A stretch of 64,000 bases of DNA, taken from contig OZ037766.1 of assembly GCA_964035545.1 (NCBI GenBank), positions 9,290,722 through 9,354,721 of the forward strand. The letters run 5' to 3'. Shown one piece after another: positions 1-45,780 of the stretch. Below the pieces are notes generated by a model that had not been told where the DNA came from, did not search any database, and saw nothing but the letters and a program-made list of their open reading frames with translations. The first letter of the stretch is position 1. Each line of letters begins with the position of its first letter. This stretch comes from Bugula neritina. Taxonomy: Eukaryota; Animalia; Bryozoa. The position numbers and the translations under genes were made by a program.

Positions 1-3000
1 CTTCCCACAATGCTTAGACTCAAACAAAGCAGCTTATCTGTTTTTCTGACTGAGCTAAGAAACAGCGTATCATTTCAGTATTTATCTGCTTATTCAGTAA
101 CTAATGAAATAAAGCAAATTCCTCAGCTGCAAAAAATCTACTGCAGCAAATAATTAATTACAAAAATTATCTGAGGTGAAGTAATCTAGTAATTGCTTTG
201 TATTTTCACGGCCTAGCAAAACCAAAAATCATAATATATTAACCAACTCCTATGTAAACATTGCTGAATGTTATCGAAAAGCTATTTTATAAACTGAGAG
301 AAAAACAGAATACTTTGCTGTAAAGACTCACATAGTCTTAGGCTCTGGGCGCACGCCAAGCTCCTTAATAACTTTGCTAGTTCCATCTTTTCTATCGATG
401 AACACATCAAATCTAATCTCGTCAACATATCCAACAGGATTGGAACGGCCAGGATCAGCATCAAATACAGTGACAAATATACTGAAATTCTAAAAACACA
501 AACAATAACAAATAGTATTATTTGTTCGTTTTATGAGACAAACGCCCAAGTGTCTATAATATAAGTAAACCAGTTGAAGGAGCAAAAAACATTAACATTT
601 TTCATGTAGCTTTTCACTGTTCTATTTGGTAGGTAGATGTAATATTTCACAGATAATTCAACTCATTCTCACAGATTACATGAAAGCTACATAATTAGTT
701 AGCAGTTAGCATCCTCACCGCCCAGTCATAGCCAGAAAGTCGAGCAACAAACGGATTTTCCCAGCCGGAGACATTCAGAGTTGCGAAATCAATCTCAGTT
801 GACTCAGCCATTACTGGAGTGAAGAAGTTGTAATAGGAGCAGTCCCTAAAGCAAATAGCAATTCATAGTAAACAGTCACTGCTATGCATAAAGCTACAAG
901 TATTTCACTGTGTTGTCTGCATGGTACAAAGAACAGTCCTTGGCCCACCTGAAACCCTTGTCATGGGGGAAGGAGGGGGGGGGTGGTGGGTTTTCATAGG
1001 GGTGTAGACTTGAAACAAAAGCTATTATTTTTTACAGTTAAATATTTACCTGCCATAATGTTTAATTTAACTACTAGCCCATAAATTTAGCACTAAGAAT
1101 AGCAAAATTAGAAAAAAATATGTCTTAATTTATCCAAACATCTTAAATGGCTAATTTATTCAAACAATTAACAAACATATATTTTAATTACTTTTGTAAG
1201 CTGCTCAAAGGTCCAATACATATATCAAATTGAATGTCACACATATCATCTGGGTTTTGAGATTGAATGGAATCACATGGACGTCCGATGGCTGTGATAT
1301 CATCTGGGTTAGTGAAGTTTATAAAGGTAACTTCAAGGTTAGTAAGCATGGTGTCTGTGCAAGGTTTCTCTGTAGTGGTGGTAGGTGTGGTGGTTGTAGG
1401 CGTTGTGGTAGTTGTTGGTGTAGTCGTTGTGGTTGTAGTTGGTGTTGTGGTAGTGGTTGTTGTAGTACTAGGAGTGCTATATGCATTCTACAAAAAGAAA
1501 TGCAGGAAAGCATATAGTTTTTGATATAGAGTTGAAACCTGCAATGCATAATGTCCAATTATTACAACAAAAATGTTTTCAAAATAAAGTAGAACAAAGT
1601 GTAATTGCTTTCTTTACAAATCAGAGCAAGACTATCGACACACTTTTTGGATTACAATATCATGTGGCTACCGGCAAGTGAGTAAAAGTTGTAATAACCA
1701 CCAGATTTCATTTCTACTCACCACATCTTTAGTAGCAGATAAGCTCAATTTCTTATTATGAGCTTGAATAATACTTTTAAGTTTCTCATGAGCTTGACTA
1801 TTGACACTGGGTACATCTCTTTTGCTTCTTGCCGCACTGTCCTGTGAGCCAGTATCCAGCATGCACTGTTTACACGTAATGGGGCAGACCTCCAAGACAC
1901 CAGGTACACTGCAGAGGTTAGGTTCACACAGGGGGTCTTCCCCAGGAATATCAGAACAAGGTGAACAATCTGCCTTCACTTCCAACACCAGTCTAAAATG
2001 TAAGTAATCAACGTGAACTCCTAGATATGAATTGCTTTTCGATACCTGAAAAGTAAAATATGTTGGCAGTACATAAAAATGAGTTGCTTAGTTATATAGA
2101 CACAAAATATTGAGCAGCCATGCAAATTTTTTGGACTCTTCCCACAATGCTTAGACTCAAACAAAGCAGCTTATCTGTTTTCTGACTGAGCTAAGAAACA
2201 GCTTATCATTTCAGTATTTATTTGCTTATTCAATAACTGACGAAATAAAGCAAATTCCTCAGATGCAAAAAATCTACTGCAGCAAATAATTAATTACAAA
2301 AATTATCTGAGGTAAAGTAATTGCTTTGTATTTTCACGGCCTAGCTAAACCAAAAATCATAATATATTAACCAACTCCTATGTAAACATTGCTGAATGCC
2401 ATCGAAAAGCTATTTTATAAACTGAGAGAAAAACAGAATACTTTGCTGTAAAGACTCACATAGTCTTAGGCTCTGGGCGCACGCCAAGCTCTCTAATAAC
2501 TTTGCTAGTTCCATCTTTTCTATCGATGAACACATCAAATCTAATCTCATCAACATATCCAACAGGATTGGCACGGCCAGGATCGTCATCAAATACAGTG
2601 ACAAATATACTGAAATTCTAAAAACACAAACAATAATAAATAGTATTATTTGTTCGTTTTATGAGACAAATGCCCAAGTGTCTATAATATAAGTAAACCA
2701 GTTGAAGGAGCAAAAAACATTAACATTTTTCATGTAGCTTTTCACTATTCTATTTGGTAGGTAGATGTAATATTTCACAGATAATTCAACTCATTCTCAC
2801 AGATTACATGAAAGCTACATAATTAGTTAGCAGTTAGCATCCTCACCGCCCAGTCATAACCAGAAAGTCGAGCAACAAATGGATTTTCCCAGCCGGAGAC
2901 AGTCAGAGTTGCGAAATCAATCTCAGTTGACTCGGCCACCACTGGAGTGTAGAAGTTGTAATAGGAGCAGTTCCTAAAGCAAATAGCAATTCATAGTAAA

Positions 3001-45780: not shown

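Follow-up and report, generated by a model that had tools for sequence, protein, structure and literature searches.

A long array of Notch-ligand-type C2 domains on mucin-like linkers, predicted to be shed, in the bryozoan Bugula neritina

The window analysed here is a 64,000-nucleotide stretch of the Bugula neritina genome (assembly GCA_964035545.1, contig OZ037766.1, positions 9,290,722 to 9,354,721 of the forward strand), and on its minus strand lies a single gene of at least 65 coding exons, in whose product a domain of the type that Notch ligands carry at their N-terminus occurs 17 times. A reading made earlier from the letters alone, without database searches (the sequence-only reading), had proposed a phase-consistent 65-exon frame for this gene. 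We read the exons on the minus strand and rebuilt the model independently, from sequence only, and obtained the same frame: it runs from an ATG at 45780 to position 332 and encodes 4,603 amino acids (aa) within the window with zero stops (the exon-62 donor being placed at 1722), every intron has AG/GT borders, and phase is kept at 64/64 junctions. A single signal peptide is predicted in the whole gene model. The window DNA is AT-rich (34% GC), CpG-depleted and of animal type. Val/Gly-rich open reading frames (ORFs) on the plus strand were considered and set aside as antisense shadows of Pro/Thr tracts.

Support from transcripts comes from two RNA runs of separate studies, on relatives 95-97% identical to the window, which were compared together with one DNA run over positions 39150-45100. 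Spliced joints were present in both RNA runs at all nine predicted introns from exon 3 to exon 12 and in none of the DNA reads, so that every splice examined in this way was borne out. Moreover, one 1,937-nt RNA contig spans exons 4-12, with 310 nt ahead of them that fit exons 1-3 plus 4 nt. The possibility of a second gene beginning at exon 8 was ruled out, since exons 7 and 8 are joined in both RNA runs; the same junction is also present in the related locus L013. The RNA comparison covers 9 of the 64 junctions, and the remaining 55 rest on the frame and on partial collinearity, with units 2-3, 5-6 and 8-16 collinear exon for exon in contigs from other bryozoan samples. This limited coverage is what can be said for several smaller genes in place of one, which, taken together with partial mis-assembly of the locus, we regard as very improbable: there is one signal peptide, the frame is kept throughout, the junctions most open to doubt (exons 7/8 and 11/12) lie within one RNA contig, and the exon chain is collinear in other species.

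The array consists of 17 units of about 150 aa, each made of an exon A (pattern ..F..xNP..G..CD..CD..F.IC), an exon B (C.Y..T.V....F....NP), an exon C (GVxIxVxVWDxD..VDEF..G.R) and, from the following exon, its first strand, which ends in Cys. Searched with a profile for each exon type, the window yields 17 exons of each (A, B and C), no more and no fewer, every one of them on the minus strand and within 332-45780, in agreement with the four-part domain of about 150 aa that had been counted from the letters. Units are a median 27-34% identical to one another, which points to an old array rather than a simple tandem repeat. The features of the gene are as follows, in the order in which they are transcribed; the ends of all 17 C2 units are approximate.

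332..45780, minus strand: coding exons of the single gene (65; 4,603 aa within the window); from the model, with RNA splices for exons 3-12
45724..45780, minus strand: exon 1, predicted signal peptide of 19 aa; from sequence, hydrophobic core
43640..45624, minus strand: C2 unit 1, the most diverged, Ca2+ aspartates lost; from profiles and motif table
43130..43642, minus strand: DSL-like insert 1, weak Pfam DSL match (E 0.006)
42511..43128, minus strand: Cys-free domain of about 125 aa (exons 6-7); spliced in RNA
40385..41754, minus strand: C2 unit 2, the most Delta-like, four Asp plus one Glu; from profiles and motif table
39620..40385, minus strand: DSL-like insert 2, above the Pfam DSL cut-off, with a 3-residue deletion in the Notch-binding loop; from Pfam and alignment
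38739..39494, minus strand: two ShK-like six-Cys modules (39405-39494 and 38739-38828) flanking a long Pro/Thr tract; from the Cys pattern
37020..38627, minus strand: C2 unit 3, Ca2+ aspartates lost, and largely lost also in orthologue L012; from the motif table
35040..36714, minus strand: C2 unit 4, five Asp; from the motif table
32160..34570, minus strand: C2 unit 5, four Asp plus one Glu; from the motif table
30395..31963, minus strand: C2 unit 6, four Asp; from the motif table
29910..30396, minus strand: DSL-like insert 3, above the Pfam cut-off, one third-disulfide Cys absent, likewise in orthologue L010
27860..29472, minus strand: C2 unit 7, five Asp; from the motif table
25795..27440, minus strand: C2 unit 8, five Asp; from the motif table
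25340..25429, minus strand: ShK-like module 3; from the Cys pattern
23820..25103, minus strand: C2 unit 9, five Asp; from the motif table
21605..23250, minus strand: C2 unit 10, Ca2+ aspartates lost (in orthologues too), with His, as DLL4 has, where Jagged1 has D140; from alignment
20140..21564, minus strand: C2 unit 11, five Asp; from the motif table
17760..20032, minus strand: C2 unit 12, five Asp, the best kept between species (exon A 63-79%); from alignment
16768..17374, minus strand: ShK-like modules 4 and 5, the former split by an intron; from the Cys pattern
10370..16496, minus strand: C2 unit 13, five Asp, containing a 5.2-kb intron; from the model and motif table
6563..10360, minus strand: C2 unit 14, five Asp; from the motif table
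3645..5984, minus strand: C2 unit 15, five Asp, preceded by the longest Pro/Thr tract (190 aa, 6022-6552); from the motif table
1965..3491, minus strand: C2 unit 16, five Asp, the final unit in orthologues; from the motif table and loci L006 and L001
1863..1958, minus strand: ShK-like module 6; from the Cys pattern
1818..1829, minus strand: RSKR furin-type site; from the motif count
1192..1487, minus strand: chimeric exon 63 (duplication junction); from comparison with L006
332..1367, minus strand: C2 unit 17, five Asp, last strand past the window edge; from profiles and motif table
1..3603, no strand assigned: recent tandem duplication with a period of 2,128 bp (1-1479 against 2138-3603); from self-comparison and L006

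Database searches were made exon by exon or with exon profiles, and the fold of a whole unit was approached through a proxy relative. The exon-A profile found 85 proteins among 1.8 billion, of which most are calls of one exon in related genomes and the next are Delta-like proteins of invertebrates, and it matched the start of the C2 domain of a gastropod Delta-like protein with 95% probability (E 2e-8). Exon B matched the adjoining stretch of MNNL-positive proteins (E 1e-4 and 5e-5) and exon C the subsequent part of an anemone Delta-like protein (E 2e-7), so that the A, B and C matches stand in collinear order, while exon 11 alone, which holds a last strand plus a DSL, matched Jagged2 and fly Delta at E 1e-5. 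A mixed profile of window exons and their relatives spans the whole Jagged1 C2 domain at E 2e-10, a partly transitive result, and also matches DLL4, Delta and Jagged2, then the tardigrade protein AMNP (E 1.7e-5) and synaptotagmin. In the ESM Atlas, an A+B fragment from a bryozoan orthologue maps to MNNL clusters. For the relative P0049, modelled from an alignment that included window exons, the predicted fold was a sandwich of eight strands (pLDDT 82), whose best fold matches were Jagged1, Delta and DLL4 (E 3e-9, Z 12-14), followed by the tardigrade proteins AMNP and TC2P and by cPLA2; this model is a proxy and not a repeat from the window gene. An intron of phase 0 between exons B and C presumably stands at the place of the second intron of JAG1.

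Several searches returned little. Exon-C profiles alone gave nothing significant against PDB, and neither exon-B nor exon-C profiles matched P0087. Searches for homologues were limited in length: one with residues 1-82 of exon 12 returned nothing, a blank that says little, one with the mixed alignment returned four fragments, and one with P0046, a sea anemone protein, returned only itself. A protein of 2,533 aa (P0082) with an apparent 16-stretch match was rejected as an archaeal repeat protein matched by chance. Taken together, the exon and family profiles and the proxy fold show, by homology and modelling, that the repeat is related to the N-terminal C2 domain (MNNL) of Delta/Serrate/Jagged, as had been recognised from its motifs, and descent from a Delta-like Notch-ligand gene is the best explanation of the gene's origin that sequence comparison offers.

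The protein runs on below window position 1, and its C-terminus was approached through related loci. In L006 (88% identical DNA) exons 59-62 are present once, and after them come an exon for a hydrophobic helix of 19 residues and a final exon that supplies a tail of 28 aa; in the more distant L001 (45-76% aa identity) units 8-16 stand in the same order and are followed by two ShK-like modules, RRRR, a transmembrane exon and a tail of 11 aa that lacks lysine. A furin-type site thus lies shortly before the transmembrane exon in both (RSKR in L006, RRRR in L001), and in the stretch of protein that the window encodes R-x-[KR]-R occurs once, as RSKR at 1818..1829. Because the L006 spacing can be added to the window, we predict three more exons, a stop near window position -975 and a full protein of about 4,760 aa. 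Since the array is followed in these loci by a furin-type site, a single transmembrane helix and a tail of 11-30 aa, we strongly infer a type I membrane precursor, where the sequence-only reading had implied a secreted protein. Placed before the helix, the site would allow the ectodomain to be severed from the anchor, either at the surface or within the secretory pathway, and on this basis the ectodomain is probably cut free from the cell surface.

The same comparison bears on the number of units. The first eight codons of exon 63 are the start of the L006 transmembrane exon and its remainder is the inside of exon 59, in frame, and the surrounding 2,128-bp tandem duplication, whose copies are 96.4% identical with introns included, is single in L006. 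On this evidence unit 17 is a recent tandem duplication and the ancestral count is 16, so that the 17 copies first counted are present in the window but only 16 of them are old. The duplication copies the RSKR site as well, and unit 17 plus one ShK-like module would therefore be released separately, as a piece of about 290 aa. It is here that mis-assembly has to be weighed, given that the species is highly heterozygous (PMC7576161) and that the near-identical units 16 and 17 could represent a haplotype duplicated by the assembler. The chimeric junction keeps the frame, however, and the bases shared across it number only about 12, which is not what a false join typically looks like and argues for a real event against an assembly artefact; 16 units remain even if unit 17 were an artefact.

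Related loci fetched from other bryozoan samples, none of them a spliced transcript and none reading through a whole unit, contain collinear orthologous blocks in at least 4-5 sequence groups (L001/L019/L012, L016/L018, L021, L022, L023/L025 and L010), and the same exon chain is collinear with much shorter introns in other species. Between the window and its closest relatives, 123 synonymous and 59 non-synonymous codon changes were counted. Comparison at the codon and exon level shows an old array that several species share in collinear order and that is under purifying selection in them. In a tree of exon A (55 columns, many forks unresolved), units group by position and not by species, which indicates that the individual beads have stayed distinct; on the same clustering we rejected concerted evolution for the array. 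Additionally, four loci (L024, L026, L027 and L005) carry the same unit type in orders unlike that of the window gene and are probable paralogous poly-C2 genes from other bryozoan samples. Single intron losses inside units were seen in one related species, with A and B fused (L010:206-577) and with C, D and A continuous (L005:21-737).

Between the C2 units lie linkers and inserts, and all 65 exons are accounted for by units, DSL-like modules, ShK-like modules, Pro/Thr/Ser tracts and one Cys-free domain. Thr makes up 24.7% of the protein, and 17 Pro/Thr/Ser tracts together cover about 1,090 aa (24%). The mucin proposed earlier is thus better described as an array of domains joined by mucin-like linkers than as a protein made mostly of Pro/Thr/Ser. 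The vWD, CysD and cystine-knot domains of gel-forming mucins find neither room nor a matching Cys pattern in the exon chain. The DSL-like and ShK-like inserts noticed in the letters are present as three and six copies, respectively. The ShK-like modules have the ShKT-type six-Cys pattern ending in CxxxCxxC, with cysteines invariant in orthologues; 4 of 12 rows match Pfam ShK (PF01549) weakly (best E 0.018), and none matched PDB. The Cys-free domain of exons 6-7, between DSL 1 and unit 2, is transcribed and also present in the orthologue L013; its exons, searched separately, had no match in Pfam, PDB or the Atlas, and its alternating strand/helix pattern suggests a SEA-like domain.

The DSL-like modules raise the question of Notch binding. 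They follow only 3 of the 17 units (1, 2 and 6), their loop is three residues short compared with Jagged2 and Delta, including the conserved Arg/Phe/His of the Jagged/Delta motif, and no EGF repeats were found in Pfam scans, in the exon chain or in orthologous 3′ ends. Because EGF repeats are absent and the DSLs are degenerate, the predicted protein is probably not a signalling-competent Notch ligand. With 17 copies, the comparison shows a C2 domain uncoupled from the EGF stalk and amplified, as the sequence-only reading had proposed. A shed protein might still act as a decoy or modulator, its three C2-DSL pairs binding Notch and dampening signalling between zooids or cells, and two DSLs above the Pfam cut-off and a DSL after unit 6 that is 68% identical in a distant species would fit such a role. 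It is nevertheless quite improbable, given the loop lacking three residues, a DSL 3 without one Cys, the missing EGF repeats, 14 of 17 units without any DSL, a tiny tail that in L001 has no lysine for ubiquitin-driven pulling, and a furin site that uncouples the ectodomain from its anchor. The protein is probably concerned with surface binding rather than signalling.

The loops of the C2 units bear on what such binding might involve. In most units the first loop carries CD..CD and the third WDxD..D-E-F, together forming the aspartate cluster of Ca2+-binding regions 1 and 3 (CBR1 and CBR3) that is seen in C2 domains that dock on membranes in a Ca2+-dependent manner. Five Asp are present in 11 units and four in units 2, 5 and 6, and the cluster is lost in units 1, 3 and 10; its loss in unit 10, and largely in unit 3, is common to orthologues, which points to specialised beads. 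Across species, 40 of 46 exon-A rows keep both CD aspartates; of 47 exon-C rows, 39 keep the full set of three CBR3 aspartates, and 34 of these 39 also have an aromatic residue in the CBR3 loop. In the mixed-profile alignment the second CD and WD fall on Jagged aspartates that are Arg and His in DLL4. In human Notch ligands, the C2 domain of DLL4 does not bind Ca2+, Jagged1 D140/D144 are required for liposome binding, and the CBR3 loop region has few hydrophobic residues (PMC5538765). Perforin docks on membranes by Ca2+ plus loop aromatics (PMC10400287), and in TC2P three Ca2+ are bound in an aspartate cluster (PMC7784755).

The first-loop motif also recalls AMNP. CD..CD is found in 13 of the 17 units, where it aligns to the metal-binding motif of AMNP (PDB 7DBT), likewise CD..CD (PMC9145152). 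One could therefore picture a metal-binding antioxidant array that holds Mn2+/Zn2+ at CD..CD and acts as a weak peroxidase in mucus or the Golgi; the motif is common to both, AMNP is a clear match of the wider profile mentioned above, and it is the top, if weak, PDB match of the exon-A profile built from the window only (E 0.55 and 0.2). We regard this as improbable. Notch ligands score above AMNP in both the profile and the fold comparison, the activity of AMNP is low (1/20 that of catalase; PMC9145152), its paralogue TC2P has been presented as no more than a C2 domain that binds Ca2+, and catalysis would leave 16 spaced copies unexplained.

The reading that we favour, with modest confidence, is a furin-shed, Ca2+-dependent, multivalent lipid- or surface-binding mucin-like protein. 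O-glycosylated Thr/Pro linkers would hold the molecule extended over a few hundred nm; the 11-14 C2 beads that combine the aspartate cluster with exposed CBR3 aromatics would be loaded in seawater Ca2+ and could then dock on anionic lipid or other anionic surfaces; and many weak sites on one flexible string may yield high avidity and cross-linking. Once released, the protein might form a coat on epithelium or mucus in which microbes, food particles or vesicles are caught or agglutinated, with units 1, 3 and 10 and the ShK-like modules as putative structural or self-association elements. A wider proposal, held more tentatively and falling just short of one we would call likely, is a bryozoan-wide family of furin-shed 'poly-C2' glycoproteins (the window gene and at least one paralogue) that would form a Ca2+-loaded membrane net in mucus, for microbe handling or suspension feeding, and that would belong, with AMNP/TC2P and the anemone and fibrinogen-fused proteins compared below, to a wider family of extracellular Notch-ligand-type C2 effectors.

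A shed array could alternatively serve as a Ca2+-cross-linked matrix of cuticle, cement or calcified skeleton, its C2 units attaching to one another, to glycans or to mineral rather than to lipid membranes. Zona-pellucida-domain matrix proteins are deployed in this manner, set free from a transmembrane precursor by furin, which would suit such a matrix, as would the many acidic Ca2+ sites, the conservation of units by position, and the occurrence of ShK-like modules without toxin function in nematode mucins and in a limpet adhesive-mucus protein (PMC7333891). We consider it unlikely, if worth keeping in view, in that the conserved aromatics beside the Ca2+ cluster are a membrane-docking signature, no polymerisation domain was identified in the exon chain, and the composition is Thr-rich, not Asp-rich like that of mineral-matrix proteins.

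A number of points weigh against the favoured lipid- or surface-binding protein itself. Lipid binding by Notch-ligand C2 domains is weak, and that of TC2P is itself untested (PMC7784755). The C2 fold rests on exon-wise and transitive evidence and on a proxy model, and in Pfam scans, which DSL inserts 2 and 3 pass and in which ShK is weak, no single exon reached the MNNL cut-off (best E 0.056). The transmembrane exon is seen in the relatives L001 and L006, outside the window, and furin cleavage and O-glycosylation are predicted from motifs. The RNA data show only that the gene is expressed in whole-colony or fouling samples.

The remainder of the window holds repeats and one other gene. Intron 51 of the array gene contains, at 12921-15007, two 800-bp inverted arms, 98.9% identical and about 490 bp apart, resembling a foldback or miniature inverted-repeat transposable element, which makes it the longest intron. 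Intron 55 (6913-8442) carries a 1.5-kb satellite of 5-bp GTAGT-like units with spurious His/Tyr/Thr/Leu ORFs, and intron 3 (44324-44920) a short high-copy repeat with a DNA depth of 13,000-38,000 against about 110 in its flanks. Upstream, at about 46960-54100 on the minus strand, lies an unrelated multi-exon gene with an acidic N-terminal part, a Pro/Gln-rich low-complexity middle and an RRM-like last exon, which we take to be RBM33-like; the pieces tried had no Pfam match. AT-rich short-period arrays extend over 53389-62119, with 6-bp TAATAC/ACTATT-type units at 55851-56865 and 62023-62119.

The Notch-ligand C2 domain is known as a single-copy domain whose lipid binding tunes signalling, and the reason for this lipid binding is debated. 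Sixteen kept copies, most with complete Ca2+ sites, offer a natural series of binding and non-binding forms in which the domain's own role could be studied, and the gene suggests how a gene of developmental signalling could give rise to a protein of surfaces or mucus. It is a candidate, too, for a part in the mucus of bryozoans, in their handling of microbes or in their attachment; Bugula is a major fouling species whose symbiont has been studied. The absence of a named family with this architecture, asserted beforehand, held up in the open-access literature and in a representative protein search: searches of the former gave no description of tandem or multiple MNNL, of a bryozoan mucin of such type or of MNNL in mucus or adhesive proteomes, and the exon-A profile search found no long multi-copy protein in a library that seems to be without spliced bryozoan proteins. 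The parts are known; their arrangement is undescribed and conserved.

Set beside the Notch ligands (MNNL PF07657, DSL PF01414 and EGF), the window protein shares C2 homology over the whole length with the same cysteines, Jagged-type Ca2+ aspartates, a C2 followed directly by a DSL in three units, and a predicted signal peptide and type I topology. It differs in having 17 C2 domains and not one, no EGF repeats, DSLs that are degenerate or replaced by Pro/Thr linkers, ShK-like inserts, a juxtamembrane furin-type site and an 11-30 aa tail. The single C2, the intact DSL directly after it, the EGF repeats and the helix-tied ectodomain with a ubiquitinatable tail are all lacking, and with these four defining features gone it would stand outside the Notch-ligand family as far as function goes, while descending from it.

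For this C2 type outside Notch signalling there are precedents that the sequence-only reading did not name, in AMNP/TC2P and in proteins with two or three copies. Like the window units, the tardigrade proteins AMNP (g12777, PDB 7DBT/7DBU) and TC2P (7DF2) are extracellular disulfide-bonded C2 domains without Notch, with CD..CD and an aspartate cluster, found by the same profile and fold search, but they are single-domain secreted proteins of a multi-gene family, without mucin linkers, DSL, ShK or anchor. They were published as tardigrade-specific with weak C2 similarity, and the available parts of the two papers make no mention of Notch ligands (PMC9145152, PMC7784755); here they were reached by a Jagged/Delta C2 profile and ranked directly after Notch ligands in the fold search, which links these supposedly tardigrade-specific proteins to Notch ligands. 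In the sea anemone Actinia tenebrosa, P0046 (XP_031571273) resembles the window gene in its three C2 units with DSL repeats, no EGF and a similar DxD..D loop; it has at least five DSL matches and represents an independent tandem expansion. P0049 (L028:83-2080), from a JGI transcript-like contig, is a 665-aa secreted protein with two Notch-ligand-type C2 domains, a fibrinogen C domain, a similar DxD..D loop and no EGF. By its domains it looks like a pattern-recognition protein, and this fusion shows the C2 type joined elsewhere to a typical pattern-recognition module. Both differ from the window protein in having only two or three copies and no Pro/Thr linkers or ShK, and both are database entries without functional study.

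With mucins of the MUC1/MUC4/MUC16 type, the window protein shares Pro/Thr/Ser tracts and, judging by the helix and furin-type site of its relatives, would also share a single-pass anchor and proteolytic release, and with the nematode ShK/SXC mucins (Toxocara MUC-1 to -4) it shares such tracts beside six-Cys ShK-like modules. It differs from both in that the tracts are 17 short ones making up 24% of the protein, in that its globular repeat is a C2 and not SEA, EGF or vWD, and in being without gel-forming vWD, CysD and cystine-knot domains. The C2 domains of perforin and cPLA2 are functional analogues, with an aspartate-cluster Ca2+ site and exposed aromatic loop residues, and perforin works outside the cell, as the window protein would. 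In these proteins one C2 is joined to a pore-forming or enzyme domain, whereas the window protein would act by avidity only, with no effector domain.

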